The position numbers and the translations under genes were made by a program. Of a stretch of 64,000 nt of DNA, positions 9,481 to 56,454 are shown piece by piece. Every line of letters begins with the position of its first letter. The first letter of the stretch is position 1. The stretch is taken from assembly GCA_002269645.1 (NCBI GenBank), contig NIVC01000017.1, forward strand, positions 124,001-188,000, in the 5' to 3' direction. The stretch is from Macrostomum lignano. Lineage: Eukaryota. A model generated the notes under the pieces. That model searched no databases. It worked only from the letters and a program-made list of their open reading frames with translations, and was not told the origin of the DNA.

Positions 9481-10573
9481 GATTCACAGCAACTCTGAGG
9501 GTGGTAATGGATTAGTCTATGGCAGTACCTGCCCTGCATACCTGGCCAAGGACTTTTCTATGGTCGCCCAAGCTTTATACTTTTTTTAGTTTGCATTTAC
9601 ACACAACACATCTTTTCGATCAGATCAAGTCTTGAAATTGGTAAGAGAAAATTCTAACAAAAGATACACCGCATCGTAAATGCTATACGATTTTCATTGT
9701 TCAAGTGAGTGTTGTGGAGAGTTTATAAGACTCTAAAATGAACACAGAGTTGATAGAAATTGGTTTAAGCAAACCGAACTTGTCCCTAACTGTGTGACAA
9801 GCTGCTCTGAAACTCTCGCCTTACTTTGCATGCTTATTTAGACCCTTTACCGTCACACCAATACCAGCTTTCCCAGTGTACGAGCAGGCTAAATTCCTAA
9901 ATTCCTAATGTTTAACTAGCTCGTATACATGTTAGACTCAAAAGAGCTGAGATAAATTTCCTAGAAATCCTCAATGAAATTTGGGCAATTTCCAGGAAAC
10001 ACAGCTTGCCCGCTGCACTCTTAACTGGTAGATTTAAAGACTGTACATTAACCCAGTCAACACATTCATTATTTAGTCTTGGTGTACGTTAGTACTATGT
10101 CTCTCTCCCTCTCTCCTCTCACTTGCAGTTTGACCGCGCTGCACTCTTGTACATTTTCTGTCTTTGCACTATTCTCTATTGTGAGTATACAAGTTGAAGG
10201 TAAGGCAAGTAAGTTGAAGGCAAATGCGAAAACAGACAATTTAAGCCTGTTTAAGCTATTTGTGCTCCATACATAGGCTAAAACGTAGTGTCTCGATAAT
10301 ATTACTGTTTTAATTCTAAATCGTCTATATTTTCGTGGGAAAAAGTCTATAGGAATTCTCTATGGTTCTCTCTTCAGTTCCCCCAGTTTCAGAGTACCTT
10401 ATTTCCACATTTCTAATACTTGGCATAATTTAAGGGTCCATGCGAATTGCCCCGCAGACGAATTTCCCGCCGAGATTTGCCCTCAGGAGATTTGCCCGCA
10501 GTGCAATTTGCCCGCGAGCGAATTGCCCGCCGAGTTTTTTCCATGGAGGAAAGAATAGAATGGAGTGCTAATC

Positions 10574-12190
10574 CATAGAAATCTAGAATACTAGTATTTT
10601 CCTTCTGTTTGACCCAACGCACACAATTAAAAACGTATATAACAATTTTCAGAAAAGGCAGTCTCTGGAGCTCCCAGCAAAAGATAGCGCCTTTTTTAAT
10701 GTCCCGCTACCACATGTGAAGAGAACGGCTGATTCCTTAATTGTAGCAAAATTTGAGAACATCAAAGAGCTGTACAATCTGGAACAGGACAAGCCACTCA
10801 AACTGGCCCCAAAACTCAACTCAAGCGTCATCGATCCAAAAAGTATTCAGAAGACCTCACCAAAGTTGGCACTAGCTGTGTTTTCTGAGTCTACCGCGCA
10901 CGCCTTGGAATATTACTCGGCGAATCAAGGAAAGCCGTGGGGCGACACTGCGACTTTTGTCCATGCGGTGACGCAACTTTGGAAAGTTTTAAATGTCAAG
11001 ACGAGCTCAATTGGCAAACATAAAAGAGACTGTTGCCGAGATCCAGTCAGGTCAGACACAGATTGGAAGCTTACCTACCTCGCGGACGTCGCTAATTATC
11101 TGCGCGAATGGAAGGCCTGCAGAAGCAAAGGTCTTAGCGACGAAACCTTTCTGGCCCTCAGTCACACGCTGGATGCTCTAGTTGAAGTCTGCAGGTACTT
11201 ACTCAATAGTCTTATGTTCGAATATGTTCTGGTCGGAGCTTTCCAGTCGGACCCACTGGAAGGAAGATTTGGATGGTACCGTCACCGAAAAGGATTAAAC
11301 TACTATGTTTCGTGCAAAGATGTTCTGGATGGTGAGAAGGCAATCCGTTCTGTTTCAGTTCTGAAGTTCAGTCATGCTGCACCACAGACAATTCAGTCAC
11401 TTGCAGCTGCAAAGGACCTGCACAGCGAGGGCAGCGACTTAATGGAAGAAGCCGGGCAAATTGCAGACCAACTAAACCTAATTGAGGAGATCGAAGCAGC
11501 TGATGCCAACGTAACCTACTATGTGGCTGGAAAAATCGCCAAGTCCATCACAGCGCAAAGAAGCTGCACTGCATGCAACCAGCTACTAGTTGCCACTCCA
11601 GACGAATCTGCAGCCGAAGCGCCATCTGACTTTCTGCGACAGCTAGACCGCGGTGGTCTAACGAACCCTTCTGACCTGGTGTTCACCATCTGCAAAGAGG
11701 CTTGGGTGATAATCATGCAACTGCAGCGCTGTCAGCGATTTCTGAAATCGAGGTACAGACACATCAGTCTGTTTGAAGCAGTTTGTTCCAAGATTTTTGA
11801 ACAACTCCCACAGTTGCGATTCCAAACGCATTGTGAGTATCAGCATCCAATCTTGCAGCTGGTGTGCAGGAAGATGTTTAACACTGCTGCAAAGAACTGG
11901 ACTAAACGCCTGTCCGCATCAGCGACTGGACCGACTGTAAGAAAAGTTGCAAAGTTTGGCGCCCACTGATGGTAAGTTTTGCATTCACTGCACTGCTTGA
12001 GAAATATAACTTGTGTACTCTTGGTAAGCAATATACCTTAAATAAAATTGTTTCAATGAAAAGAATGATAAATAAACATTAAAATTTTGGGGAAATAAAA
12101 CTTTTGGGGAAGAGGAGCTTTTTATCCCGGCCCGAGTATGTACGCCCCCGCGAAAGCCTTCACTTCCAGTTAGTATTCTAGATTTCTATG
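10574..12190 (+). mobile_element. Internally deleted P-element/THAP9-like DNA transposon
   Basis: Perfect 20-bp TIR CATAGAAATCTAGAATACTA at 10574-10593 and 12171-12190. No TSD found. Confidence 0.85.
10653..11969 (+). pseudogene. C-terminal part of a P-element/THAP9-type transposase (GTP-binding insertion, C-terminal RNase H part, C-terminal domain)
   Basis: Motifs LKLAPKL...QKTSPKLALAVFSES, FQSDPLEGRFG, YYVAG. The ORF starts at a splice acceptor only about 60 bp inside the TIR, so the THAP domain and N-terminal catalytic exon(s) are absent. Confidence 0.8.
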
Positions 12191-13944
12191 GACTTACTAA
12201 GCATTGGGGAGGCAATGCAGACAAAATCAAAATGCGCTGCAAGAAAAAGCGTCGCGGGCAAACCTCGGTGGGAAAAGCTCGGCGGGCAATTCTCCTGCTC
12301 CCATAACTTAAACTAAAGCAAACGAAAAAAAATAATCGTGTTGTGACCTAGAATGCGAGCTAAGTAGTAAACAATTCTGATGGGGTTTGTCCGGTGTCCT
12401 CCACCTGACCAATAGATGATTTCTTATAAAAGTACAAGGATTGTTAAAAAGTACAAAAATACAGTAAACTCTGTGTTTAATGCAATTTACTTACATGCCA
12501 CTTCGAGTTTCGTTGGATTTGAAAGGAAATTCTTTTCAAGAACAAGACTCTTGATTTCCTGTTTCTTGGAAACTTCTTTACATTGCCGGTTCCGCTGGCT
12601 CTAAATGAGTCAACTTGCGCTTAGATTTTCTTACGGCTTCCACTTGCAGCGCAACTTTATATGCAAATTAGTCACAAGGATGTGTGTGTGTTCCATGTTT
12701 TTTTCTCAGAATTACGGAGTTGGGTATAGTTGGCACATGTGTTTAAGGCGCATCAAGATCGCAGACACAATAGAATATAGCTGTCATAAGTATTTTCATC
12801 TCTGCACCGAGCACAGAGAGTTTAACTCACCCTGCAGCCCGCGTGTAATTACACTTGTAGTTTATTTTTAGCCGACTGCAATTCTCCGCTCAAAATTTGC
12901 TTATACTGCTGACAGTACGAGTACAATAATGTAAAATGCATAGACAGTTATTTTTTTCTTATCTTGTCTCTGCTCTTCCGGATGTAAGCTAAACACCTCT
13001 GTTGCTTTTGTCTACATGCTTTGTACTCTAATAAGATTCTTATGATTGCATTAGGTATCCAGGATGTTGCATTTAGTATCCAGGATGTTGCATTTAGTAT
13101 CCAGGATGTTGCATTCAGTATCCAGGATGTTGCATTCAGTAAGGCAGGGCTAAGGTGGGCGTCTGTGTAAAACGTAATTTGAAATTTAGTAAACCGATTA
13201 CTCTTTTCACTTAGCGAATAACAAACTTATTAAATAAGTTATCGAGTAAGGAAACCGAGAAAAAATAGGAAAATGTTGCGGCAGAATATGGTATAGAGAG
13301 GGTAGCAGCTGAGGGCAACAGAGGGTAACAGGGGGAAACAGAGGTAAGCAGAGGGTAACAGAGGGCAATAGAGGGTAACAGAGGGAAACAGACGGTAACA
13401 GAGACAAGGATGCCAAGAATACCCGCAGATTTTATAGAAATAAATTATGATATATAGCTTATTTCTTTCTTGACTAGGCTTATCCATGATTCCATACTAC
13501 ATTGGGGATGTACTTTTTCTAAAATTCTCAAAATTATCCAAAACCTATTGTTTTATCTCTAATTTTCTATATTTTATCTCAAAAGGAAAAAACTAAGCTA
13601 CTTAGCATAGTAGCATCAGCCATTTTTTATAAATCACAGCAATATATTTTAATAAATTAGAGACGTCAAACAAAATTACGATTAAAAAATCACTAAAGCT
13701 GAAATTCGAACAAATATCGGGCATGAAATACACGAAATTCGACTCAGCTGATGGGGAGCAAAAGCAGCAGGGCACAGCTGCACTTGGCAAGTTGTGTGAA
13801 AGGCCCGTGATCTCGCTGCAAAATGCACTGTGCGAGATTGTAATTGCTCAGTTTTTCAAGCATTGAATTGACATTTATTCTAATCTTGTGGACTTTCGGA
13901 TCTGGAGCGCGATTTTTCCAAGATTGATTTCGTGGTTTTACTCA

Positions 13945-27693: not shown

Positions 27694-28032
27694 GGGGGTT
27701 GCAGCCTAGTGGTCAGAGCGTCGGACTCACGACTTGAAGGTCGGGGGTTCGATTCCCGATTCCACTGGAACAATTTGTGTCATTGAGCAAGACACTTAAC
27801 TCGATCTGCATTGCTTCAGTTCACCCAGCTGTAAAATGGGTGCCAGCATTAGCTGGGGTAATTGAGGATGTGTGTGGCGACCCCCCAGTCCTTGGACTGA
27901 ACAGCCGTACGCAGCCTTCAGATGCGCCGCGCAATAGCTGCGGCTGAGCTGTCGGTTGCACATCTGGCCCAATTGGGACAGGTGTAATCGATTACTATTA
28001 ATATATTATTGTTATTATTATTATTATTATTA
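27694..28032 (+). mobile_element. tRNA-derived CORE-type SINE, copy 2
   Basis: Same A/B boxes, CORE-like block and (ATT)n tail as copy 1. Confidence 0.9.
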
Positions 28033-28719
28033 GACACTAACACCATTGTTGTCTTCTAAAAATAGATTTTAATGGAATTACCCAACTAATTGTTTAAAGT
28101 CAGCTGATAAGACAAATTAAAATAAAAAAGTTATTTAAAGGCACAAATTGGATACCTGGTCAACTACAATTTAGCATTAATTAATAGAAATCAATATTTG
28201 CACCAAGCAGAGCCCAGCTGCCAGCTCCGCTATGATGCAAAACTTTTAAATTTTTATTATAACAGTTTATAATTACAGAATAGCAATCATAGCATAATAT
28301 TTAACTGGAGCGAATGTAGATGCTTTTTTGAAATACCGACGAAACCCACTGCTACTGACAGTAGCATATGCTAAGCTACAAAGTCGAGTAGTGCGACAAA
28401 ATTTTCAAAAATAAATCACAAAAGTTCGCTAAACATACATGACTAAGACAGAAAGCACTTTTATTAGACATTCATACAAAGCGATTTGATTTGAAAACTT
28501 GGGATAGCAAGTTATTTATTATTAATAATGCCACCGGTTATGCTTACTGGTCAGCTAGACAAAATGTAATTAGTTTAAAACCCCTGTCTGGCAGTACAAA
28601 ATGCGGGATAACAACTGTTAAGATCAAATTCAATGCTCAAGAATGATGGCTTACGCCCGCGGCAGACACGGGCTGCTGTTGGTGATTCTTTTGGAAAACC
28701 CAAGTCTACAGAGGACTGA

Positions 28720-29170
28720 GGAGAGGAGGGGGAGAGAAGAGGGAGAGGGAGAGAGGTGGGAGAAAAGGAGAGAGGGGAGAGAGAGAAGAGGCAGATAGGA
28801 GAGGGAGATACGGGGGATAGAGGAGAGGGGGAGAGAGGAGAGGAGAGAGGAGAGGGAAAGGAGAGTGGTGAAAGAGCGAAAGGAGAGAGAAGAGGGAGAT
28901 ATGGGGGAGAGAGGAGAGAGGGGGGAGAGAAGAGGAGAGAGGAGAGGGAGAGAGAGAAGAGGAGAGGAGAGAGGAGAGAGGAGAAGGAGAGGTAGGAGAG
29001 AGAAGAGGGAGAGAGAGGGAGAGAAGAGGGAGAGGAGAGAGGAGAGGAAGGAGAGAGAAGAGGGAGAGAGGAGAGGGAGAGAATAGGGAGAGGGAGAGAA
29101 GAGGAGAGAAGAGGAGAGGAGAGGAGAGGGAGAGAGGAGAGGGAGAGAGAAGAGGAGAGGAGAGGAGAGC
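28720..29170. repeat. GA-rich low-complexity tract
   Basis: Almost exclusively G/A. Confidence 0.9.
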
Positions 29171-29324
29171 GGAGAGGCAAAGGAACAAAGGCGAAAGGGA
29201 AAGAGTTAGAAAAGTACATGCAATCCAAAGCTAGCACAAACAGACCCACCTCCGACCGCGCACAGAAGCAAATTGGGCAACTCATTTATACCCATGCATG
29301 CAAATGAATACGCAAAACAGACAG

Positions 29325-32300
29325 TCAAAAAATCCTATCGTAGTTGGGATTATCCGGGAAATTCCTTGTTGGCGGCACCTGCATCCGGGATCCGCCGGGC
29401 CCGCCGCGGCCCACGCCGCCTCCGCCGGCGCCGCCACCGAGGACGCCCATGGGCGGCTTGGCCTGCCGACTGGACACAAGCAATTCGAAGCAGCTGACAT
29501 CGATGGTCTGCAGCTTGGGCTCGATGCTGGTGCGCTCCGGCTCGACAAAGAAAAAGTTGTGATCAAGCGCGTGCTCAGCCGTCAGGCGGGTGGCCGGGTT
29601 CAACTGCAGCAGCTTGTCGATGAGGTCGAGGCCTTCCTCGGTGTCGTTGATGTAGCGGCGGAGTCGCTCCTTGACCTGGCGAATATTGTTAAAGTTGGTT
29701 TCTACACCCTTTCTAAGAAAACGAATTAGAACATTTTTTGAAGCGCCAGATTCCACGGATATAATCCAAATAGCAGGTGATTACACCTGTCCCAGTTAGG
29801 CCAGATGTGCAACCGACAGCTCAGCCGCAGCTATTGCGCGGCGCATCTGAAGGCTGCGTACGGCTGTTCAGTCCAAGGACTGGGGGGTCGCCACACACCT
29901 TCAATTACCCCAGCTAATGCTGGCAACCATTTTACAGCTGGGTGAACTGAAGCAATGCAGAGTTAAGTGTCTTCCTCAAGAACACAAACTGTTACAGTGG
30001 GATCGGGAATCGAACCCCCGACCTTCAAGTCGTGAGTCCGACGCTCTAACCACTAGGCTGCAACCCCTTAGATAGAACCCCATAGGTACGATTGATATTC
30101 TAAGAAACTTAAACATACATGCGCAACTGCTGGCCGACCTAGCCGATCTGACTACCGTAAATTGTGGCGGACCAGGGGTAATTCGCAAAAATGCCCACCC
30201 CAAAAATTACAGACGTAGTACTAATTAGATGACGAGGCATTTAGCCCTTATAAGACAGTTATAGTTACTCCTGCCGTTTACCCAAAAGCGTTAATTTTGC
30301 TTTACGGTTTCTTTCACAGATAAGTCGAATTTTTGGTCAAAAAGTAAGTCGCATGGCCAGTGTAAATCAGGGGGTTGCGCATGTATGAACTTAAATAGCA
30401 TTCTAGGAACTTGAGCCACATTTCTAGGAAACGCCTGACTTGATATTTAAACAATAAAATCCTAAATTCCAGGAATACAATCCAGATTCTAAGAAATGCA
30501 AAACAGATTCGAGGAATGACGATCTGCTTTCTAGGAAATGCGGATAAAGTATAAAAACTTGGACAATATTGAAAGAGTAAATTAATTGTACATATAACTA
30601 CTAAGGGCTACAGGTTTTACCGAATACATTATACTTAAGTAGGCCTTGGCAACTAAATACTAAAAGTAGTAACTGGATGAATGGCCCTGCCATGGCAACC
30701 GCCAAGAAAATTTCTAATCACCTTTCGTTTCTGATTACTCGGCAAGCCGGCGCACATCTCCTGGTACAGTTCGAGTTTCTCGCAGTTCGGCCACACCTCC
30801 TTAGTGATGGAGCCGCACAGGTTCACAATCAGCTCCAGTTGCTTCTGCTCGGCACCGCCTTGCATAATTGGCGATCTGGTCCACATCTCCGCCACGATGC
30901 AGCCGACGCCCCACATGTCTAGCGGGGGTCCATACTGCCGGTCTCCCAGCAGCAGCTCCGGCGGCCTGTACCACAGGGTCACCACCCGGCCTGTGTACTG
31001 CCTGGTCTTGTCGCTGGTGGTTATGTTGCGGGCCAGGCCAAAGTCTGCGAGCTTCAGCACGCCTGCAGGTCGCATTATTGTTTATTGATGTGCAGTTGGA
31101 ATGTACATGTCTGTACACAGCCTCACTGCATCATCACTGTACACAGCTACAGCTAGAATGGAGTCTGTACACAGCCTCACTGCATCATCACTGTACACAG
31201 CTACAGCTAGAACGGAGTCTGTACACAGCCTCACTGCATCATCACTGTACACAGCTACAGCTAGAACGGAGTCTGTACACAGCCTCACTGCATCATCACT
31301 GTACACAGCTACAGCTAGCATGGAGCCTGTACACAGCCTCACTGCATCATCACTGTACACAGCTACAGCTAGCATGGAGCCTGAACACAGCCTCACTGCA
31401 TCATCACTGTACACAGCTACAGCTAGCATGGAGTCTGTACACAGCCTCACTGCATCATCACTGTACACAGCTACAGCTAGCATGGAGCCTGAACACAGCC
31501 TCACTGCATCATCACTGTACACAGCTAAAGCTAGCATGGAGTCTGTACACAGCCTCACTGCATCATCACTGTACACAGCTAAAGCTAGCATGGAGTCTGT
31601 ACACAGCCTCACTGCATCATCACTGTACATAGCTACAGCTAGCATGGAGCCTGTACACAGCCTCACTGCATCATCACTGTACACAGCTACAGCTAGCATG
31701 GAGCCTGTACACAGCCTCACTGCATCATCACTGTACACAGCTACAGCTAGCATGGAGCCTGAACACAGCCTCACTGCATCATCACTGTACACAGCTACAG
31801 CTAGCATGGAGCCTGTACACAGCCTCACTGCATCATCACTGTACACAGCTACAGCTAGCATGGAGCCTGAACACAGCCTCACTGCATCATCACTGTACAC
31901 AGCTACAGCTAGCATGGAGTCTGTACACAGCCTCACTGCATCATCACTGTACACAGCTACAGCTAGCATGGAGCCTGTACACAGCCTCACTGCATCATCA
32001 CTGTACACAGCTACAGCTAGCATGGAGTCTGTACACAGCCTTACTGCATCATCACTGTACACTAACACAGCTACAGCTAGCATGGAGTCTGTACACAGCC
32101 TCACTGCATCATCACTGTACACAGCTACAGCTAGCATGGAGCCTGTACACAGCCTCACTGCATCATCACTGTACACAGCTAAAGCTAGCATGGAGTCTGT
32201 ACACAGCCTCACTGCATCATCACTGTACACAGCTACAGCTAGCATGGAGCCTGTACACAGCCTCACTGCATCATCACTGTACACAGCTACAGCTAGCATG

Positions 32301-34182
32301 GAGCCTGAACACAGCCTCACTGCATCATCACTGTACACAGCTACAGCTAGCATGGAGTCTGTACACAGCCTCACTGCATCATCACTGTACACAGCTACAG
32401 CTAGCATGGAGCCTGAACACAGCCTCACTGCATCATCACTGTACACAGCTACAGCTAGCATGGAGTCTGTACACAGCCTCACTGCATCATCACTGTACAC
32501 AGCTAAAGCTAGCATGGAGTCTGTACACAGCCTCACTGCATCATCACTGTACACAGCTACAGCTAGCATGGAGCCTGTACACAGCCTCACTGCATCATCA
32601 CTGTACACAGCTACAGCTAGCATGGAGCCTGTACACAGCCTCACTGCATCATCACTGTACACAGCTACAGCTAGCATGGAGCCTGTACACAGCCTCACTG
32701 CATCATCACTGTACACTAACACAGCTACAGCTAGCATGGAGTCTGTACACAGCCTCACTGCATCATCACTGTACACAGCTACAGCTAGCATGGAGCCTGT
32801 ACACAGCCTCACTGCATCATCACTGTACACAACTACAGCTTGCAGGCAGTCTGTACACAGACTCAGCATCATCACTGTACACAGCTACAGCTTGCAGGCA
32901 GTCTGTACACAGACTCAGTGCATCATCATACATGCGCAACCTCCAAATTTCGGTCGGCCGTGCGACTTAGTTTTAACAAAAATGCGACGTAGTTTTTGGC
33001 CAAAAAATGCGACTTACATGTAAAATAACCCAACAGCAAAATTAACCCAACTTTGGGTAAACGGCAGGAGTAACTATAACTGTCTTATAAAGCCAAAATG
33101 CCTCGTCAGCTACTTAGTGCTACTACTCTGTGTTTTTCGGGTCGGCATTTTTGCGACTTCCTTGGTTGGCCGCCAAATCGGTCGGCCGGATCGGCCGACT
33201 GTTGCGCATGTATGTGCATCATCACTGTACACAGTCTCACTGCATCATCACTGTACACAGCTAGCTGCTGTAGAGTGTGGAGGACACTGTCGGGGAGTCG
33301 CCACTGCACTCTCACCCCGAAGTAGTTCACGGCAGCTCAGAGAGCTGCTAACTCTATAACGGCTGCGTGAACTGGAGCTCAGCTTAATTCGCCACTGGCT
33401 CACGCTGGGTGCCATGAGGGGTGACACAACCTGCCTATTCTGCTCAAACAATAACTCTAGATAACAGGCACTCGAGACAACAAACCTTTCTTAGAAATGA
33501 GTATATTGGCGGCCTTCATGTCTCTGTGCAGAATGTTGACCCTGTGCAGATACCACACACCCTCCAGCAGCTGGTGCAGCATGTCCTTCTTCTCAGCCAG
33601 GGTGAATGTCACTTTCGGATTAGCCAATAACCCGGCCAGATCGTGATCGAGCATTTCGAATATCAGGTGAAACTCAGACTTGTACCGATTAGCCTTAGTC
33701 GGCTCGGTCTTGCAGATCTCCAACAGTTTAACAAGATTTTTATGATTTGCGGCCAATAGAATACGAATTTCTCGAATAGCCGTGATGGGAAAGCCTTCCA
33801 ATTCGTGCTCCATCTTGATCTTCTTCATAGCGATCAGATTCTTTTCTAATCGGCTGCGCGCTTTGAACACCTCGCCAAATGTGCCCTGGCCAATTTTCAT
33901 AATCCGCTCATACTTCTTACTACTGTCGCCGCATAATTTGCTATCGTAGCGGCCCAGAGAGGAGAGGAAGTCGGTCAGGCTGACCTCCGTGTCGCTTTGA
34001 AGCTGAATCTGGCGAGCTGGCGGCTGCTGCTCAGTTGAGCTGCTCGAGTTGGCTGGGTCGGGCAGACCAGCAGAAGAGGCGACAGCTGCAGTAACTGAGG
34101 CAGCAGCTGCAGTCTCATCTACATCCATTGCTGTGTGACCAGAAGAATGAGTAGCATTTCTAGCCTGCTGCTGAGTGTCCAT
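29325..34182 (-). CDS. CDK9: Cyclin-dependent kinase 9 (P-TEFb kinase), about 462 aa with an Ala/Ser-rich N-terminal extension
   Basis: Exons 34182-33486, 31062-30722 and 29675-29325 join in frame (1389 nt). KIGQGTFGEVFKA, GFPITAIRE, HRDMKAANILI, DFGLAR, YTGRVVTLWYRPPELLLG and C-terminal YDRIF* match CDK9. Confidence 0.95.
29779..30067 (-). mobile_element. tRNA-derived CORE-type SINE, copy 3 (CDK9 intron 2)
   Basis: Reverse complement of copies 1 and 2, without the tail. Confidence 0.9.
30114..30387 (-). mobile_element. MITE (P- or hAT-type) carrying a 28S rRNA-derived core, copy A
   Basis: Perfect 14-bp TIR CATACATGCGCAAC, perfect 8-bp TSD AACTTAAA, 28S-like 64-mer at 30220-30283 (-). Confidence 0.9.
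31105..32920. repeat. 54-bp minisatellite, about 33 copies, CDK9 intron 1
   Basis: Unit GTCTGTACACAGCCTCACTGCATCATCACTGTACACAGCTACAGCTAGCATGGA. Source of the 597- and 640-aa spurious ORFs. Confidence 0.97.
32927..33214 (+). mobile_element. MITE carrying a 28S rRNA-derived core, copy B
   Basis: Same 14-bp TIR, perfect 8-bp TSD TGCATCAT, 28S-like 64-mer at 33055-33118 (+). Confidence 0.9.
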
Positions 34183-36769
34183 TGCAAGATATGGCAAAAG
34201 CACTCTGGAAGCAGTCAGCAGCAGCAATGGTCAGTGCAAATCTTAGCCAAGCAGATTTGGCACAACATGCATTCAAGTAACCAGATTCAGTACCAATTTC
34301 AATAGAGATAAAATATGCTCTATCAATAGACAATTCAAAATAAAGCAAAATCTCTATTGTGCTACTGCTGCCTAAGTAGCACCATGAGGGAAAAGAATTT
34401 TTTTGTGAAATTTCATATTGATATCATTATTTGTTTATTATCTTATTTACAATTTATAGCTAACTTTACGAGCTTGTACATATTCAATAGTTATATTATT
34501 ACTATTATTATCTATGGTTTTTAATTTCATAATGCACTGTAATGACTATTTTAGATTGAATTACAATATATATAATCATTTCTTTGATTTCTAACATTAA
34601 ATATAGAAAGTTATATTGGCAATAATGGTGGCTATAGTGGGAGTGGCTGCTGCTTTGGTGGCTATGATGTTTTAACTTTTATATTTAAGCTTAGAAATCA
34701 AACAGAACATTTATCTAGATTGTAAATTCAATATAAAATAGTCATTACATTGTATTACATTACCTAAAGGCATATAAAAAAAAGGAGAAATAAAATTCTA
34801 GGCTTTTCTGGCACTATAATGTGACAAAAAATGATGAAGGTGCCAATTGGGACAATGGTAGTGGTAGCACAATTGTTTAAAAAATTTTTTTAATTAATTA
34901 ATAATAATTAATAATTAATAATAATTAATAATTAATAATTTAGTTTAAAATAATTTAGGATCTGAAATATAATTGGTTTGTTACTATAATTGCAAATATG
35001 ATTATTTTATTGAGTGGTCCAATCTGGTGATAGTGATAGTGCTTGGATGACTCTAGGCTAAATTACAATGAAATCTCTGTTACTATTATATATATGTATC
35101 TTTGAAAGTAAACCTTATTTTTTATCAAAAAATGTAATAAACAATCTCAATTTTAATAATAAAAGCTAAAGCCTAACTTATCAATTGATAATATTTTAGT
35201 TTAAAAAAACTAATAACTTATTAAATAAGACTTATATTATGATTAAATCTGGTTTGTAGAAACTACAATGTTGATATATTTTAATTTAAAAAACTATCAA
35301 TATACTGGCAAACAAAAAAACTAATTATTTATCAGCAAAAATATTTTTTATACCAAATTTTACCTTGTCAAATTGCATCATTTTTTGCACTATATTGTGT
35401 AAGATCTTCCTTACTTGCTATTGCATTATAATACAATAGAACAACATATATATATTCAACTATTTTTTATCAGAATTTTCTCTAAAAGGTTATCTTCCTA
35501 ATTATGGTTACTTTAAGTAAAGCTTTATACCTTTGGCTTTAGTCTTATGCATTTTAAAGTAAAGTCAAAAAAAGATAGAAAAATAATAAATATATTGTAA
35601 ATAGACTTTTAAATATAAAATATTAAATTAAAAAATATATAAGAATATAAGTTATAAGAGAAGACTAGGCCTACATTAAATAAAACATAGGCCTAGGCCT
35701 AAAATTAATGATTTTTTCATGATAGTTTAAATTTAATGATGAATTAAATATTTTGATTTTTAACTGTTTTATTAAGCACACAGCATATCAGTCTCCCTTT
35801 TAGGCCTAGGCTATGTCTAGGCATACAAGTGCTTTTTGTCAAATAGTTTTCTTTAATAATTTTACTAATCAAAAGATTGGGGGCAAGGGATATGGGACTT
35901 AAGTCGACTATTAGGCCTATGGCTACGGTCCCTGGACATTTCGGTGACAGGACGTTTCGGTGACAGCCTTTTCGGTGACAATTTAGGACGATTCGGTGAA
36001 AAATTTAGACGATTCGGTGACACGTTTTAAAAATGGAAGTTAATTTTGTCTGTAAGATAATAAACTCATGAACAAGACTTAATACTCAAAACTCGTCAGA
36101 TTTTATTGCTTTGCGTTGATTTTGTAACTGACTTTGTTATATCTTTACACTTAAATAAAGGGTCATCTGCATTTCTAGATAAAGGTCAGTCGGCTGAGGC
36201 GACACGTCAAAGAGGCTTTTCATATTACCAATTCCAGAATCTGAATCGGTTCGGATCTTCCACGAAAAACAGCAGTATAACTATTTAATTCTGTTAATAT
36301 TTGACTGCCTTAACAACCTCACTTAGCACAATTTTTTACTTTCTTCTTGGCGATTGTCATTCAATAATAAAAACTTTATAGCACGTATCTCCTTCTAGTT
36401 ATGGAGACAAAAAGTTATACTTTACAAATTGGTTTTGGTTCTGGAACCAGAACAAGCAATATGAAAAGGCCCAAAGTCGCTTATTTTACACACTATAGCA
36501 GCATCATTTTTGCGACACTATCTGGATATATACCTGTCTTCAAGGCAATTCGTGTTAAAAATGTACATGTAGCCATGAGTCGCCTGGTCGATCTACTGTA
36601 TTGATGCAAACAAAAGTTGTGGTTGTAGTTTGTTACTCTACTATCAGGGCTATGGAGAGGGGGCTGGGACATTCCATGCTTTATCCCCCTGCACCGCGAC
36701 CCCACTTTAATTTTTTGACCTGTTATGATGGAAATCAATAATTTCTGCATGTTTTACGGCGACAAAAAA

Positions 36770-37599: not shown

Positions 37600-40500
37600 A
37601 TGGACGATTACTGCCCAAAATGCAGCCATGCTGTTAGCGGCCGCCAACATGCACTTAACTGTGATAGATGCAAGTTTTGGTATCATCGACTCTGTTTAAC
37701 AGGTAAGATTCTAAACTTCGCTATTTTGCCCAACTTTTTCGTGTTTAACAGAAAAAAGGTATTCCATCATAAATTCTACATGTAACTTCGCCGAATTTCA
37801 CTTTCCCATAATTTCATTTGCTCGTAATATCACTCCCAATGCCAATTGCATCTCAAAGCAATTGCATACACGGATGCGTGTAGCCAGTAAGTACATGTAC
37901 GCTCGTAGCTACAGTCCATGCCACGCCTTTTTGTTATCATTTTAGGGCGCGCCAGCATCTCTATGGCTAAATATCGTGAGTTACAACGCCACAGCTCCTT
38001 TAACTGGTGCTGCCCAAACTGCAGTTTAGCGGGCAATGAAGCTGCAGCGGATGAGGAAAGTGAGCAGGTTGCTACAGCCAGCGAATCTGAGGATGAAGCT
38101 GCAGCGGATGAGGAAAGTGAGCAGGTTGCTACAGCCAGCGAATCTGAGGATGAAGCTGCAGCGGATGAGGAAAGTGAGCAGGTTGCTACAGCCAGCGAAT
38201 CTGAGGATGAAGCTGCAGCGGATGAGGAAAGTGAGCAGGTTGCTACAGCCAGCGAATCTGAGGATGAAGCTGCAGCGGATGAGGAAAGTGAGCAGGTTGC
38301 TACAGCCAGCGAATCTGAGGATGAAGCTGCAGCGGATGAGGAAAGTGAGCAGGTTGCTACAGCCAGCGAATCTGAGGATGAAGCTGCAGCGGATGAGGAA
38401 AGTGAGCAGGTTGCTACAGCCAGCGAATCTGAGGATGAAGCTGCAGCGGATGAGGAAAGTGAGCAGGTTGCTACAGCCAGCGAATCTGAGGATGAAGCTG
38501 CAGCGGATGAGGAAAGTGAGCAGGTTGCTACAGCCAGCGAATCTGAGGATGAAGCTGCAGCGGATGAGGAGGTTGTAGCTGATGATGGCGGGATGATTCA
38601 CGATCTCTATGAATCAGTTAGTGACCCAGAACCCAGGCCAATAGTTGAGCGAGGTCAAGAGTTAGAGACTTTTGAAGTCATGCAAGACGGAGGCAGCCGA
38701 GGGAACGTTCTTGTAATATCGTCGAATGGGTACTCCTATGGCCTTCATCGTCGGCGTGGTGCTCGTGAATATTATCGTTGCACTCAGCGCAGTCGTCATA
38801 CCCCTTGTTGTGCTACTCTAATTCGCAGTGCCGGTGAAGAGTTCAAGCATGGGAAAAGCGGGCACAGCCATGCACCAACCCTTGGTGCTTCTGCTACTCG
38901 AAAGATTTATCGAGACGTAAAAGTTGCTGCCTCAACGGATGTCTTTAAGTCTGCGGCACAGCTTACAGATGATAGACTACTGCGCGAACTCACTTCCTCC
39001 ACGGCAGCGAACTTGCCGAATCCAACAAATCTAATTAGAGCTGCAAACCGGTTTCGCGAAAGAGGACGGCCAGAGGAGCCTAAGGATTTAAACTTCCAAC
39101 TGCAGTTGGAAGCCTTGCCCAATGGATTTCTCAGAAGTGATGTCCACGTTGGAGGAAGACGACACTTAGTATTTGCTACTAATCATCAATTGACACTACT
39201 GAGTAGTGCCCACGAGTTGTTCATGGACGGTACGTTTTCAATTGTCCGACGGCCATTTGTGCAACTTTACTCGATTCATGGCTTTCTCCGTGCTGAAGGA
39301 CATCTGAAACAGGTGAGCATGCAATAGGTCAATATTACGATCGTACTAAGCTCTAATATACGGAATTCGAATCCCTGGAACTATATTTTTGTATGAATCC
39401 TAATGAATCACACAACATCACGTCTTCTCTTCCCTCTTCTCTCTTGTCTCTGTTCTCTTTTCGCCTCTTTCATCTCTCCCCTCTCTTCCCTCTCCCTCTC
39501 TCCCTCTCTTCCCTCTCTCCCTCTCTCCCCTCTCCCTCTCTCCCTCTCTCTCCACTCTCTCCCCTTTCTCCCCCCTCTTTCCTCTCTTCTCTCTCTCTAC
39601 CTTTCTCCCCTCTCTTCCCTCTCCCTCTCTCCCTCTCTTCCCTCTCTCCCTCTCTCCCCTCTCCCTCTCTCCCTCTCTTCCCTCTCTCCCTCTCTCCCCT
39701 CTTTCCTCTCTCTTCTCTCCCTTCTCTCCCCTTTCTTCTTCTCTCCCTCTCTCCCTTTTCTTCTTCTCTCCCCTCTCTCCCTTTTCTCCCCTCTCTCTCC
39801 TCCCCTCTCACCTTTCTCCCCTCTCTCTCCTCCCCTCTCACCTTTCTCCCCTCTCTCCCCTCTTTCCTCTCTCTTCTCTCCCTCTCTCCCTTCTCTCCTC
39901 TCTTCTTCTCTTCCCTCTCTCCCCTCTCTCCCTCTCTCCCCTCTCTCCCTCTCTCCCCTCTTTCCTCTCTCTCTTCTCTCCCCTCTCTCCCGCCCTCTCC
40001 TCTTGCTTCTCTCTTCTCTCTATAAGGGAAAGAGAGACAGGCGGATGTTGTACATGATTGCATGCTATATACATGTGTATGTACTGTATCCATGTATTGC
40101 AATTACCGCCGTTTTAAACTAATGGCAAGTCCCATTAGCGTTTGTCCTAATGTCTGGAAGAAAAAAGCGCGACTACAAGGCAATCCTGCGTGAAATTCGA
40201 AGACTAGTTCCTAACATGGATCCGAAGAGTTTTGTCCTGGATTTCGAGCACTCTGTGTGGAAGGCGATCCGGAGGGTCTTCCCAAATGCTAGTGTTCGTG
40301 GCTGCAATTTTTACTGGACTCAAGCAGTTTGGCGCAAAGTCCAGAACATAGGACTTCAACAGTCCTATCAAGAAGATGAAGGCACGCAAAAGTTCTTCCG
40401 GAAAATTATGGCCCTGCCTTATTTGCCCGCGGACACTATTGTGGCAGCCTTTGACGAGCTTCGGACAGAAAATGCCGTTGAAGCTGACGAACGTCTAGTT

Positions 40501-40869
40501 GAGCTCTGCAATTACGTTAGCGGCACCTGGCTAACGGAGGGCCATCAATGGACTCCAGGAGACATTTCTGTATTTGGCCAGCCAATACGAACCAACAACG
40601 ACTTAGAAGGCTGGCACTACCGCCTTAATCGCAAAGCGGGACGACGGAACCTGCACTTCTACCTGCTGGTACAACTTATTTATGATGAGGCTGCCTTAGT
40701 ACTTCTTCAATCTAATCTGCTGTCTAGAGGTATGCTTTCTCGTGAACAGCGGAAGACGTATAGAACTGTTCAGTCCCGTCTGTTCCGATATTGGGCAGAG
40801 TTCGATTCTGGCAACCGAACGGTACGACAGCTTCTTCGAGCCTGTGGTCGGCTGTGTAATCCGAAGTGA
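37600..40869 (+). CDS. PHD-finger + acidic repeat + FLYWCH + MULE DDE transposase, probably defective
   Basis: Exons 37600-37702, 37946-39312 and about 40129-40869. C4HC3 PHD is split by intron 1. FLYWCH-like YYRCTQR...C...H..H. DDE motifs FMDGTF, VLDFE, TNNDLEGWH. The CxxH motif reads GCNFY. The exon 3 acceptor is 1 nt out of frame. Confidence 0.8.
38038..38570 (+). repeat. 57-bp in-frame coding repeat (EAAADEESEQVATASESED) x9 inside the transposase exon
   Basis: Identical units with 57-bp period. Confidence 0.95.
39430..40020. repeat. CT-rich low-complexity tract in transposase intron 2
   Basis: Almost exclusively C/T. Confidence 0.9.
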
Positions 40870-50065: not shown

Positions 50066-50363
50066 CCTATAAGGAATAAGTGGACAAAAGGTGTCCAATT
50101 TCTGTTGCAATTTTAGAATTTTCTAATGTCACCTTGTAGCTGGAGTCAAGGCAGGTGGTGTCACAGTACAGTGCAGTTTTTGGGTAAATAGCAGGAATAA
50201 CTATGACTGTCTTATTAAAGCTAAATGCTATATCATCTAACTAGTACTATGCCTATATTTGGTGCAAAAGTTAGGATGTTCTCTGTCGCATTGCATTTTT
50301 GAATTACAATTTTAGACCCCGTGTCAAACATCTGCAGGTTTTTTTACACTTATTCCAATAAGG
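50066..50363 (+). mobile_element. Degenerate about 300-bp inverted-repeat element with a diverged 28S-like core, copy C
   Basis: GGAATAAGTG / CACTTATTCC inverted ends and a central 64-mer at 50182-50245. TSD not convincing. Confidence 0.55.
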
Positions 50364-52073: not shown

Positions 52074-55000
52074 TCACTCAGGGCGATAAAAATCAGGAGG
52101 CCTCCGCTGTCGTACCGAACGTCTTAGCGCTGGTGGGACGACCGGGTCGATTGCTGCTTCGGTGTCGCCGTCGTCATCGTCATTGCCGCCTGACAGCTGA
52201 GCCCAGGCGTCAGGCACACCCAGCTGCTCAGGACTGGTGCTGGTAGCCGGAGCCGGCTGCTGCTCATCGGTCAGTTGCAGAGAGCCGCGCCGCTTCACGA
52301 ATGGCTTGAGGCGGTCATGGTGCACCACGAGCTTGCGACGCCGCCGAACCGCTAGGCCAGGTGCCAGCCGCACTCGATAGTTGACCTCACCCAGCCGCTT
52401 GAGAACGACGTAGGGCCCCGTCCAGCGGTTGCTGAGGCTCTTGGAGCGACCAGGCTTCACCGTCTTGCAGCTTAGCATGACCAGATCGCCTTGGTTGTAG
52501 GGCTGAAACCGCACGTCCTTGTTGTATCGTTCGTTTCTCTCAGTCTGCGCGCTCTGAAGCTTCTGGTGGACGAGCCTCCGACTCTGCAAAAGCCGTTTCT
52601 GAACATCCTCGACGTAGTCCAGAGTATCCGAAGCGCCGCTGTTGGTGTGCGGCAGCTTGACATCAAGCGGCAGTCTTGGTGGCCAACCGTGTAGCACTTG
52701 AAACGGAGACAGACCAGTCGTACAGTGCGCAGAGCTGTTGGATGCCCATGTGACAAAAGGCAGCTGTACATCCCAGTCGTCCTGGCTTTCCGCTACGACC
52801 GTCGCCAACATGTTACCGAGAGTGCGGTTTCCGCGCTCCACCAGGCCGTTGCCACTCGGATGAAACGGGGAAGTTCGAGTCTTCCGCATCCCGAGCTGCT
52901 CACACAGAGACTGAAACAGCTGGCTCTCAAATTGCCGGCCCTGGTCACTGTGAATCGTGTCCGGAACTCCGTGACGTAGGGCTACTTGATGGACCAGAAC
53001 ATCAGCAACTCGCTCGGCTTCGATACTTGGTAGAGCACGGGTTTCCATCCATTTGGAGAAGCAGTCGCAGATGCTCAGAATGTAGCTGTTGTCTCGAGGC
53101 GTCCTTGGCAACGGCCCCTTAATGTCGATTTGCACGGTCTCCCAAGGTCGCGCCGGCTGTGCTGTACTCTGCAGTGGAGCTCGCTGAGGGCGACTATTGT
53201 TCTTGCGCCGAAGGCATGCTGCACAGCTGGCGACCCAGTTCTGGACATCCTGCTGCATTTTTGGCCACCAGCAGCGCTCACGCAACTTCTGTAGTGTTCT
53301 GTCCGCGCCGAGGTGACCGCTAGCGGCTGCATCGTGGGCGTCGGCCAGGAACTCGGCTCGCAGATGGCTCGGAACGACCGGCTTTCCTTGCCTGACCAGC
53401 GCGCCATGCGGTCCGATCTCAATTCCGTCATCGCCCAAGAACTCCTCGACCTTCTACTGACCGCTGTTGGACAGGTGCTCGCGTCCCTCGGTGAGCGCCT
53501 TGAAGACACTCTGCAGAAGCGCATCGCGCTGCTGTTCCTCTAGGAAGTCTTGATCCCTGCTGCTGTCGAGCTGAGTGGTGGCGGTTCGACTCAACATGTC
53601 CGGGACGACATTCTCTCGACCAGGCCGATAGCATGTCGGCACAGGTATGACCTGAAATGTTTTTGGCTCCAGACTAAGGCGAGCAGTTCTCTGTCGGTAG
53701 CTGAGTAGTTCCTTTCTGCCTTATTCAGAGTTCTTGAGGCAAAAGCGACCGGCAGTTCCGAATCTCCGTGTGCCTGACTGAGGACCGCGCCGACTGCAAA
53801 TGCGCTTGCATCGCAACTCAGGATGAAGGGCCGGCTTAAATCTGGTAGTCTCAGCACGGGAGCCTGGCAGATCCTTTCCCTTAGTTTGGTGAAAGCGCTC
53901 TCACACTCATCCGTCCAGGTGAAGCCGGTCTTTTGCGTTGCTGCATGCAGAGGCGCGGCTATCCTGCTGAAGTCTTGGATGAATCGCCGGTTAAATCCCA
54001 GCATGCCGATGAATCGCCTCACTTCCTCAGCTGAACTCGGCGTCTTAATCTTCGATAAAGCTTCCACCTTACTGGGGTCTGGCTGAATTCCTTCGCTGCT
54101 GACCACATGGCCCAGGTACTTGACACTACGGTACGCAAACACGGACTTCTCCTTGTTCAGTTTCAGGCCAGCGCTTCGAAGCCGTTCAAAAACCCGTCTA
54201 AGGCTGACTAGATGCTGATCAAAGCTCTTACTGAACACTATTAGATCATCCACGTTGACCAGGACCTCCTCCCATGTGAGGCCAGACATGATCAGCTCCA
54301 TTAGTCGTTGGAACGTAGCCGGCGAGTTGCACATTCCAAATCCCATTTTCTTGAACTGCATGAGTCCTCTGGTCGAGTTAAATGCCGTCTTGTAGCGGTC
54401 GGCTTCCTCAACTTCCACTTGATTGAAACCCTGCTTGCAATCGATTGTCGTGAACCAAGAGCAGCCTGAGAGCGCGTCCATGGACTGTTGTAGGTGTGGG
54501 AGCGGATAGGCGTCCTTTACCGTAGCGGCATTCAGCTGGCGCCAGTCAGTGCAGATGCGGATGTCTCCGTTCTTTTTCTTGACCACGATCAAATTGCTGG
54601 CCCATGGAGAGCTCGACGGCTCAATGATGTCGTGCGCAAGCATCTGGCCAATCTTGTCGTCGACTCGGTCCCTCAGCGGCAGGGGGAGCGGGCGCTGGCG
54701 CTGCCTGAATGGCCGTGCTCCTGGCTCGAGCTCGATGTGGTGCTTTAGTACGCTTGTGGAGCCGAGGTCAAACTCATGAGTGCTGAACAGGTCGTCGTTG
54801 GCTTTCAAGATGGTCATCAGCTTGTCTCTTTCTAGCTCTGTCAGTTCGGGGTTCACGTCCCCGTTCTTCAGTTTCTCCTTCACGTTCCCAACCGGCTCGA
54901 GTTCATCAGCAGCTTCGAATTCACCGACTGCTTTGTTGGCATACAGTGTTACTGCCTCGGATCCCAGATTGCACATGAGAACGGGAATCCTCTGATCGGC

Positions 55001-55594
55001 GGACAAGGCGAGAACTCGGGATGCCAGCAGACCGGTCTCTTGAGTAAACTCCGCATTCGGCTCGAAAACGCCCTGCTCATCTTTTGACTTCACTCGCAGC
55101 CAGACCAGCTTCTCACTCCTAGCGGGGACGTTGATGTTGCACTCAATGCGGGCCACCAGCGTCCCGGTCACCATTTGAATTTTTGAGCTGTTGGTGAAGA
55201 CAGTCTTGTTGTTGATGTTAATCCGTAGCTCGCTGGTTGCCCGACCGATAAAGTCCATCCCTAGGATAAGGTCTACGCTTATTCCCTCTACGACGTTGAA
55301 TACATGGTCCAATCGAGTCGTCTCTCCAACTTGAACTGTTCCCCGGGCTGTTCCGAGGCACTGCAGGCGACTACCGTCTACTGACGTTGGACAGCAGCTG
55401 CTCCCGGACTCGAGCTGCAGGCCGCATGACCGCATGAGGCTGTGGCTGATGAGGGATGTCTGTGCACCAGTGTCGAGCAGGAAGCAGACCGGCTTTTCTT
55501 GCAGCAGGGCACGCACAAAAACAGAATGAGCAGTCTGGGCACTTACTTGGCGGGTTGGGGCTGGCCCGTCGCCTCCAACCCTCAGAAGTTTCCC
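52074..55594 (-). pseudogene. pol: pol (protease, RT, RNase H, integrase) with an RNase H deletion/frameshift near 53640 and a TAG at 53454
   Basis: LLDTGA; YPLP, FGMCNSPATFQR, VNVDDLIVFS; CDAS...ELLA; HHCC, IDIKGP, SDQG, GLVER, GPY. No chromodomain. Confidence 0.92.
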
Positions 55595-56454
55595 GCCGGC
55601 CGGGCTTTACTTGGGCAGACCGCTGCATTGTGGCCCCAACCGGAGCAGTTGAAGCACCGACCTTGCTTGTGGGAACCTTTAGTTGGACATCTGCGCGCGA
55701 TGTGACCGTCTTTGCCGCACTGATAGCAACCGGATGTTCTCTGGGCCTGCCGACGGTCACCTGGTCCAGCGCGGCCTCCTCTAGCGGCGCCGCTTGTCAC
55801 GGCAGCTGTCAGTGTCTCCAGCTGCTGCTCGAGTCGGGACAGCCGGTCGTCTACCACGGAGACCATAGACGAACATGCGGGCGTGTTCTTGCTCATCACC
55901 TGCTCCAGTCTGGTAGCTCTCTCGACCAGCGTGCCCAGCGTGCATGTATCCGAGTCGCTCTCCTTGAGCAGGGCTTCGCGTATCCCTGCGCTTTATAGCT
56001 GGATAACTCTTAACTTGACCTCCCGATCACGGAGCGTTGATGGGTCATCCGGGCGGGCTCTCATGTTCAGCAGCCTGGGTGCGAACGAGAGCTCCCTGAT
56101 TGACTCGCCATTCTTTCGTTGTCGACCTTGGAACTCCTGCATGGCGCGGTGCTGATTGGCTGAGCCGCCGTACTGCTGGAGAAGAAGTGCCTTGATTTTC
56201 TCTTAACTCTTTTTATCGGCATCTGGCATGTCCCAAACACCGACCTGGGCCTCCCCTCTCAGCAGGAGCTTCACTTTGGAGGCACGCTTTGCATCGTCCC
56301 AATTCTTGTCTTCGGCGAAGTTTTCAAAGATGCTCAGCCAAAAGTGCACGTTTGATTGGCCACTTAACTTGGGCGGTAGCAAACTGGCGTCGTTGCTCTT
56401 CTCATCTCGCTCTTCCATTCTGATCTGCCAACTTGAATTGGGCTTCGCTGCCAC
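55582..56454 (-). pseudogene. gag: gag with two CCHC zinc knuckles, interrupted by in-frame TAA at 56203-56205 and 55993-55995
   Basis: CYQCGKDGHIARRC and CFNCSGWGHNAAVC; the frame is continuous across the stops. Confidence 0.9.

Follow-up and report, generated by a model that had tools for sequence, protein, structure and literature searches.

Two introns of a CDK9-like kinase gene of Macrostomum lignano each hold a small inverted-repeat element whose centre resembles the segment of 28S rDNA targeted by R2 and I-PpoI, with the cut site itself altered. The question raised by this locus is how a piece of rDNA came to be carried by a DNA transposon and whether it serves any purpose there. Here, the window refers to the whole stretch of DNA analysed, i.e., 64,000 nucleotides.

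In the first instance, the two elements have to be established as such. Copy A (30114-30387, minus strand, i.e., the 28S-sense strand) is 274 bp long and aligns over its full length with copy B (32927-33214, plus strand, 288 bp). A CDK9-like exon on the minus strand (30738-31066) separates the two introns, neighbouring CDK9-like exons lie inside 33457-34227 and 29325-29756, and the translations of the exons flanking both copies match Pkinase, some homologues being named cyclin-dependent kinase 9; the sequence-only reading of this DNA, which had reported two elements of about 280 bp in different CDK9 introns and in opposite orientations, is borne out. The TIR, CATACATGCGCAAC, has exactly four matches in the window, namely 30114-30127 (plus), 30374-30387 (minus), 32927-32940 (plus), and 33201-33214 (minus), with 14/14 complementarity within each copy, while shuffled sequences give 0.38 matches at two mismatches or fewer. 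The TSDs, read directly from the sequence, are AACTTAAA for copy A (30106-30113 and 30388-30395) and TGCATCAT for copy B (32919-32926 and 33215-33222), their length being fixed at 8 bp and their sequence differing between the two insertions. Copy B interrupts a 54-bp minisatellite of 33.5 units (31111-32928), which resumes after 33215; since the flanks of B joined with a single TSD copy rebuild its unit with two substitutions, i.e., CTGTACACAGACTCAGTGCATCATCACTGTACACAG, B is a true insertion. In the left arm of B, subterminal direct repeats TGCGAC(K)TA occur as three exact copies (32961-33016, plus strand), in copy A, on its own strand, one copy is exact and two are nearly so, and all four exact matches of the window fall within A or B. 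Fold-back of the element exceeds that of shuffles (z = -3.1). Neither copy has coding capacity, every frame being interrupted or meaningless, and a peptide search with the longest translated frame of the element returned no candidates. The perfect 14-bp TIRs and 8-bp TSDs reported earlier are thus exact in both copies, and, with differing TSDs and a reconstructed empty site for B, A and B are genuine non-autonomous DNA transposons that inserted independently of each other.

These MITEs may be of hAT-, P- or Mutator-type. hAT elements exhibit a terminal YARNG motif and an nTnnnnAn target preference; the 8-bp TSD fits this superfamily, but the ends begin with CATAC, position 2 of the TSDs is A or G, and agreement with the preferred target is confined to position 7 (A). 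Members of the P superfamily have 7-8-bp TSDs, ends starting with CA, and a THAP9/P-type transposase, and the TSD length and CA start of A and B agree with this description. The window also contains a remnant of a P-type transposase (TNP-like GBD, E = 2.7e-9), the inverted repeats of which are unrelated to those of the MITE. The P-like ORF at 10716-11969 and MULE-like ORFs were considered as autonomous partner and rejected because their ends differ from those of the MITE; the 64-kb window has no other TIR match that would reveal a partner with CATACATGCGCAAC ends.

At the centre of each copy lies a 64-bp core, at 30220-30283 (minus strand) in A, where it is identical to the 64-mer originally described, and at 33055-33118 (plus strand) in B. 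The 28S reference given originally is confirmed by an 84-bp R2 target (bioRxiv 10.1101/2024.11.11.623112) and by oligonucleotides (PMC13000458), which also fix the R2 bottom-strand nick at TTAAGG^TAGC; the I-PpoI site string and I-PpoI are named together in seven papers. Copy A matches this published target at 55/64 positions ungapped (blastn-short E = 6.5e-11 against the 64-kb window), which upholds the proposed mimicry of the R2/I-PpoI target, and the span runs from -36 to +28 relative to the R2 nick. Beyond the 64 bp, homology to the literature-derived 28S is not significant upstream or downstream (P = 0.2-1.0), so the capture amounts to 64 bp. Rfam returned no LSU match, either at gathering or at E <= 10. 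Of note, a near-threshold Rfam match to tRNA belongs to an adjoining SINE.

Two copies had been counted originally; A and B stand, and a third core is present at 50182-50245 (plus strand), within a copy C of about 284 bp (50073-50356, plus strand) located 17 kb away. With the same core but different ends, copy C is older and represents a sister family. Its putative left TIR, GGAATAAGTGGACAAAA (50073-50089, plus strand), pairs with 50340-50356 as an inverted repeat of 17 nt with 88% complementarity (P about 0.005-0.008 for such geometry), and these two ends are the only matches to that sequence in the window. Matches to copy C by blastn and nhmmer are restricted to the core. C is not merely a decayed member of the A/B family, since its arms cannot be aligned to those of A and B while its own inverted repeat is intact. 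No further copies in the window were found by blastn or nhmmer besides A, B and C, so the evidence base for the family is three copies. Family-specific patterns had 0 matches in two scans of metagenomes, one of prokaryote genomes and one of viruses; two ORFs of the window, looked up exactly in search of further copies, returned no record; and about 50 kb of Macrostomum lignano sequence together with one marine contig, reached via Gypsy homologues, contained no MITE and no 28S-like piece.

The three cores are 81-86% identical to 28S and depart from it in the same way, by G12A, by C28G and by a rearranged stretch of 8 nt over the cut site; a few non-28S flanking bases are also common to A, B and C. 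These common departures argue for one capture, and at the level of sequence the alignments establish both the 28S origin of the core and its single capture. When judged against the known helix-69 (H69) pairing of 23S/28S rRNA, G12A and C28G each disrupt one pair without compensation, and the core is therefore under no rRNA-like constraint. The cut site merits particular attention. In the ungapped alignment, mismatches 34-38 of copy A are indeed consecutive and located over the cut site, and copy B is likewise altered there, carrying the rearranged stretch as do A and C. With gaps, however, the five mismatches resolve into a TA insertion, a TA deletion and one or two substitutions. The idea that divergence is non-randomly focused on these positions is not supported, since an alteration common to all three copies is probably one compound mutation with a single origin before amplification.

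The functional bearing of this alteration can be considered under the published target rules of Bombyx mori R2 (R2Bm; PMC10499050). R2Bm recognises a region spanning -34 to +1, in which the RUM, an upstream anchor motif, comprises A-31, G-27, C-26 and A-22, and the RASIN, the insertion motif TTNANNT, runs from T-6 to T+1 at native distance, with +1 tolerated (PMC10499050). The captured span includes this whole region. All copies keep the RUM bases, as AACGGCAGGA in A and B and AATAGCAGGA in C, whereas TTNANNT is absent from anywhere in the A, B and C cores, such that, going by the motif, the R2Bm cleavage signal is clearly lost in every copy. By R2Bm rules, a retained anchor with a lost cleavage motif fits the suggestion of a site that binds but resists R2. 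The I-PpoI site, CTCTCTTAAGGTAGC, is replaced in copy A by CTGTCTTATAAGGGC (9/15 ungapped), its half-sites being shifted by the TA insertion. No R2 sequence is inserted in A, B or C.

Taken together, the locus is best read, with a probability of about 0.65, as a multicopy MITE of "Pack-TIR" type, in which a 64-bp 28S filler was captured once and has since been a neutral passenger, the change at the cut site not being designed. As in Pack-TIRs, a host-derived segment, here of 64 bp, lies between arms bearing subterminal repeats; the species' own rDNA lies outside the window. The mechanism of capture and its neutrality are what we infer, as follows. A transposase would act in trans on the 14-bp ends and the TGCGACKTA repeats, leaving 8-bp TSDs. 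In a common ancestor of the A/B family and the sister family of C, a single event would have copied the 28S segment from -36 to +28 relative to the R2 nick, 64 bp in all, out of the host's high-copy rDNA and into the centre of the element, likely by template switching or gap filling as a break or an excision gap was repaired, after which the fragment would have spread as a passenger. The change of the R2/I-PpoI site would have a single origin before amplification or would have pre-existed in a damaged rDNA source copy. Such captures have precedents, 370 cases of short host fragments in animal TIR elements having been reported, with a median of 224 bp, mostly in hAT elements and a few of them multicopy (PMC8277862), and rDNA modules in TEs have been reviewed as mostly non-beneficial reshuffling (PMC10946416). 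The initial proposal that a DNA transposon captured this rDNA window therefore stands as regards the 28S-derived centre and its single capture, but the fragment is best read as a passenger and no purpose-built decoy. TIR elements are known to take up pieces of host DNA (PMC8277862), and TE parts derived from rDNA are likewise described, but the review of the latter lists no DNA transposon with a 28S coding fragment (PMC10946416).

Comparison with known systems delimits what is particular here. Pack-TIRs and Pack-MULEs (Tan et al. 2021, PMC8277862) likewise have TE ends flanking a short internal host fragment and include multicopy cases with distinct TSDs, for which template switching or gap filling is the proposed origin; their cargo, however, consists of single-copy gene fragments with the above median length rather than 64 bp of rDNA, and here the captured module is common to two families with different ends. 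The mammalian SINE28 (Longo et al. 2015, PMC4994717), in the terms in which it is listed in PMC10946416, is also a mobile element with a 28S fragment, but a retroposon rather than a TIR/TSD cut-and-paste element. Pokey and mPok, i.e., the Daphnia piggyBac element and its MITEs, are associated with this very hot spot of 28S and contain rDNA-derived sequence; Pokey nonetheless inserts at a 28S TTAA and carries IGS repeats, whereas the present element carries the target segment itself, is intronic, and has 8-bp TSDs rather than TTAA. A fish R2 lineage whose 3' UTR contains 28S-like sequence (Kojima et al. 2016, PMC5035012) has internalised a piece of 28S from near its own target, but there R2 itself made the acquisition, which shifts the insertion site, while in the present case the R2 site is borne by an unrelated DNA transposon. 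Finally, 5S-derived SINEs and Cassandra/Ajax TRIMs possess rDNA-derived modules conserved within TE families, with the clear benefit of a Pol III promoter; no comparable role is evident for the helix 69-71 fragment.

Some features sit uneasily with a mere passenger, namely that C has only the core in common with A and B though its ends look intact, and that the A-B differences are unevenly spread, with a 39-nt identical block over the 5' half of the core (P about 0.008-0.05). Outside the 8-mer, 2/56 positions of the core differ, whereas in the arms, which are 83% identical, 27/163 do (P = 0.012, post hoc). The TIRs and TSDs of A and B show 0 changes in 88 nt, hence post-insertion change is below about 3.3%, and with arms at only 83% the divergence of A and B must have arisen in still-mobile lineages. 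It is on this basis that the core may be regarded as a module under transposon-level selection, kept while arms and ends diverge, either as a binding site aiding mobilisation or repair copying, or by "R2-proofing", where the cut site is destroyed so that R2 cannot insert and kill the element. The identical block in still-mobile lineages and the core common to a family with different ends would suggest constraint, and the absent TTNANNT with RUM bases kept in all copies would agree with R2-proofing. We nevertheless deem this explanation unlikely: statistical support is modest, in part post hoc, and drawn from n = 3 copies, the arms are richer in CpG than the core (5-10 vs 2), and template-switching mosaic MITEs would yield the same pattern neutrally. 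We know of no function for such a 28S sequence in a DNA transposon.

Less probable again is an rDNA source that carried the change before capture. It would have been a divergent or damaged unit, such as a 28S pseudogene in which R2, a homing endonuclease or a transposon targeting TA or TTAA had left a scar at the insertion hot spot, and the MITE would keep that old scar. Because all copies have the rearrangement, it cannot be younger than the family; R2, I-PpoI and Pokey are known to share this hot spot, and the change of TTAAGG to TTATAAGG would be the duplication expected of a TA-target insertion followed by excision. A single compound mutation after capture accounts for the data equally well, though, and no LSU-like ACTGTCTTA...AAATGC occurs in the metagenome, prokaryote-genome and viral collections scanned.

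The 28S sequence that directly follows the captured piece provides a further hint, since its first 13 nt match the right end of the MITE at 10/13 positions (P = 0.0005 for adjacency, 0.015 anywhere), a resemblance that no simple model accommodates; the TIR-like motif is GACGCGCATGAATG. As the actual end of the element this motif was rejected, since about 92 bp separate the captured piece from the real TIR. One might conceive, from the sequence, of a conserved mobile module present in two MITE families with different ends, with R2 anchor kept and cleavage motif lost, acquired through transposase binding to this TIR-like 14-mer, which adjoins the segment in every 28S gene, but such a reading is very unlikely. 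The 39-nt block, the core present in two families and the abutting TIR-like 28S motif are three unexplained hints.

Some further roles, in part proposed by the sequence-only reading, fare worse. Per-copy scars of R2 or homing-endonuclease cleavage, R2 landing pads out of rDNA, or sources of rRNA-antisense small RNA would draw on the fact that, of the five positions at which the cores of A and B differ, three lie within the 8-nt cut-site stretch, and on copy B being antisense to 28S within the CDK9-like pre-mRNA; all are highly improbable, as end-joining scars would hardly leave 8 nt in each of A, B and C with substitutions only, no copy has a cleavable motif or an R2-like insertion, and identity to 28S is limited to the range given above. 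A host-level decoy or sponge, in which dispersed copies bind R2 or an I-PpoI-like nuclease uncut and so protect rDNA, is scarcely credible despite the RUM kept and RASIN lost in three copies over the full R2Bm recognition region, because the low-information RUM, in its strict consensus, occurs 85 times in the 64-kb window with no excess over shuffles, which makes titration implausible as MITE copies add little binding capacity, while any selection on single, scattered intronic copies would be very weak, C itself is decaying, and the I-PpoI site is so poorly kept in A.

If the core is only a passenger, this family is a tidy multicopy Pack-TIR example in an invertebrate, extends the short list of TE parts derived from rDNA by a DNA transposon with a 28S coding fragment, and carries the practical warning that intronic rRNA-like matches may be TE cargo. 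If the core were constrained, or the 28S motif bound the transposase, there would be a mechanism explaining why one particular rDNA segment is captured, and the interplay of a DNA transposon family with the R2 target region could be tested. Should the mobile-module reading be true, a DNA transposon family would be physically linked to an rDNA insertion hot spot, spreading an R2-binding, R2-proof site through the genome, with possible cross-talk between DNA transposon and R2.

Two MITEs, copy A (30114-30387, minus strand, 274 bp) and copy B (32927-33214, plus strand, 288 bp), lie in opposite orientations within introns of one gene, the exons of which translate to a CDK9-like kinase, as the sequence-only reading had placed them. 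The window has exactly four copies of their 14-mer terminal inverted repeat (TIR), CATACATGCGCAAC, arranged as two inverted pairs (30114/30387 and 32927/33214), against 0.38 matches in shuffled sequence with two mismatches permitted, and each pair is immediately flanked by a perfect 8-bp target site duplication (TSD), AACTTAAA and TGCATCAT, respectively. Copy B sits inside a minisatellite (54-bp unit, 33.5 units), the unit of which is rebuilt, save for two substitutions, when the flanks are joined with one TSD, which marks B as a genuine insertion event. A and B align end to end, fold back more strongly than shuffles (z = -3.1) and each carry three to four subterminal TGCGAC(K)TA motifs, of which the four exact matches in the window all fall within A or B. 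As such, the pair originally described, with its perfect TIRs and TSDs, is confirmed and is extended by a third copy of the core, copy C.

The core is a 64-bp central segment (30220-30283 in A, 33055-33118 in B) compared here with a 28S reference taken from the literature, namely the 84-bp R2 target from structural work, which holds the entire 64-mer and flanks (bioRxiv 10.1101/2024.11.11.623112), and, for the upstream sequence, a yeast 25S probe and a stick-insect primer. Cleaved-strand oligonucleotides (PMC13000458) locate the nick in the bottom strand at TTAAGG^TAGC, and the I-PpoI site string was found together with I-PpoI in seven papers. Copy A matches this reference at 55 of 64 positions ungapped (E = 6.5e-11 in the window), which bears out the identification of the core as the 28S R2/I-PpoI window. 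On neither side does homology to the literature-derived 28S flanks extend past the 64 bp; the captured piece therefore corresponds to -36 to +28 relative to the R2 nick. A search of Rfam returned no LSU match. Two substitutions common to all copies, G12A and C28G, each disrupt a helix-69 base pair and are uncompensated, and nothing suggests an RNA-level constraint on the core.

The third core (50182-50245), recovered by blastn and nhmmer of the window, is 81% identical to that of A, and the sequence on either side of it does not align with the A/B arms. A 17-nt inverted repeat, GGAATAAGTGGACAAAA / TTTTTTACACTTATTCC, lies about 105 and 96 bp from the sides of this core, nearly at the exact distances of the A/B ends (P about 0.005-0.008 for the geometry), and its arms have no other matches in the window. 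Copy C (50073-50356, plus strand) is best read as an older sister-family element with only the central module in common with A and B. It also has G12A and C28G, the 8-nt stretch at the cut site rearranged as in A and B, and a few non-28S bases beside the core, so that the three copies go back to a single 28S capture rather than repeated ones. Within the core of C (50187-50196), both CpGs are now TA (ACGG to ATAG, CTCG to TATA), with the side effect that the upstream motif fits AWWWGCNNNA, the strict consensus of RUM, the upstream motif of Bombyx R2 (R2Bm).

The 8-bp TSD is compatible with hAT, P or Mutator-type superfamilies, and the A/B ends (CATAC...) are at odds with the usual hAT terminal motif. 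The P-type and MULE transposase remnants of the window have unrelated ends. The former, of P-element/THAP9 type (10716-11969, plus strand; TNP-like GTP-binding insertion domain, E = 2.7e-9), carries inverted repeats (10520-10549 / 12263-12292) and tandem repeats of its own GAATTGCCCGC type and is not the partner of the MITE. FLYWCH zinc-finger and MULE transposase ORFs occupy 37918-40869 (plus strand); within the first, an acidic peptide repeat is encoded by a 57-bp repeat (38036-38570, 9.4 units) whose units are 100% identical, so it expanded very recently. The MITE family is absent from metagenome, prokaryote-genome and viral collections, and no related element was found in about 45 kb of Macrostomum lignano DNA. 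The proteins encoded in the window have no database entry. Elsewhere in the window are a Ty3/Gypsy retrotransposon (52074-55760, minus strand), whose RT-RNaseH and integrase reading frames are open over long stretches and which among named sequences is closest to a Macrostomum lignano protein (76% protein, about 72% DNA identity), and three copies, 92-97% identical, of a tRNA-headed SINE (29881-30066, minus strand; 2452-2636; 27695-27887), one of them about 40 bp away from copy A. Against the Rfam tRNA model the SINE head reaches 28.1 bits, where the threshold is 29, and no tRNA was called on it by ARAGORN. Minisatellites are extremely dense (80 TRF rows), with over 15 arrays, each 0.5-1.8 kb long and built of 12-62 bp units, many of them 90-100% homogeneous; long GA/TC-rich tracts lie at 28718-29177 and 39473-40021.

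Some observations do not fit a neutral capture neatly. While the TIRs and TSDs show no change in 88 nt, i.e., post-insertion change below about 3.3%, the A and B arms have diverged to 83% identity and accumulated many indels, so the bulk of the A-B divergence arose while the lineages were still mobile. Given that divergence, one would not expect a 39-nt block in the 5' half of the core to be identical between A and B (P about 0.008-0.05); outside the 8-mer, 2/56 core positions differ, vs 27/163 arm positions (P = 0.012 in a post hoc test). The core is also the sole part common to C and A/B. These comparisons are based on three copies, and both the conservation and the core-only sharing have neutral explanations, namely arms that are CpG-richer than the core, and mosaic elements. 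Moreover, the 13 nt of 28S abutting the captured piece 3' (GACGCGCATGAAT) resemble the right end of the MITE (GTTGCGCATGTAT; terminal repeat 33201-33214 / 30114-30127) at 10/13 positions in the same orientation (P = 0.0005 if abutting, 0.015 anywhere in the reference). Because the MITE itself ends about 92 bp further outward, the 28S motif is not simply a used cryptic end; transposase bound to it could have brought the rDNA donor near the repair site, or the resemblance may be coincidence.

As for the cut site, the stretch between CTTA and AAATGC reads AGGTAGCC in 28S, TAAGGGCT in A, TAAAGCCA in B and TTAAAGCT in C, 8 nt each. Mismatches had been proposed to focus there, and five are indeed consecutive when A is aligned ungapped. 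Gapped, A has gained one TA (TTAAGG to TTATAAGG), lost another (GGTAGC to GGGC) and undergone a C to T change, i.e., a compound mutation older than the family; most of the run of mismatches thus comes from aligning without gaps. Of the five A-B core differences, three fall within this stretch, a clustering that is suggestive but comes from a very small sample, with the stretch picked after the fact. The change is either one compound mutation post-capture or a scar that the donor rDNA copy already bore; independent end-joining scars in the individual copies are made less likely by the constant 8-nt length.

Cleavage by Bombyx R2 requires RUM (A-31 WWW GC NNN A-22), the insertion-site motif RASIN (T-6 T N A N N T+1, with T+1 essential) and a fixed RUM-RASIN spacing, at most one extra base being tolerated (PMC10499050). 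The specified RUM bases are kept in all three cores, C matching the strict consensus, and TTNANNT is absent anywhere in them. Under this scheme the copies could be bindable but uncut, so the proposal that they bind yet resist R2 holds as consistency, not as functional evidence. R2 is known from flatworms, non-site-specific forms included (PMC5035012). Dispersed decoys are unlikely on quantitative grounds: the window has 85 matches to the strict RUM consensus, not above shuffles, and RUMs on the MITEs would contribute little extra binding capacity. The adaptive readings, i.e., decoy, landing pad or small-RNA source, are unsupported.

What stands is capture of a 28S window by a DNA transposon, supported by the 64-bp match inside elements with TIRs and TSDs. 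Non-autonomous animal TIR elements acquire short host fragments via gap filling or template switching, and a survey of 100 animal genomes recorded 370 such Pack-TIRs, mostly hAT, with a median host fragment of 224 bp and a few of them multicopy with distinct TSDs (PMC8277862). Such a route is the most likely one here. Being high-copy and often broken, rDNA is a likely donor. Reviewed rDNA-derived parts of transposable elements include 5S-derived SINEs, Cassandra, SINE28 and Pokey IGS repeats, and most such acquisitions were judged to be without benefit to the element (PMC10946416). The chance of more than passenger capture is small here, and A, B and C would represent a multicopy MITE lineage of Pack-TIR type carrying a fragment of 28S that, at 64 bp, is shorter than the surveyed median.
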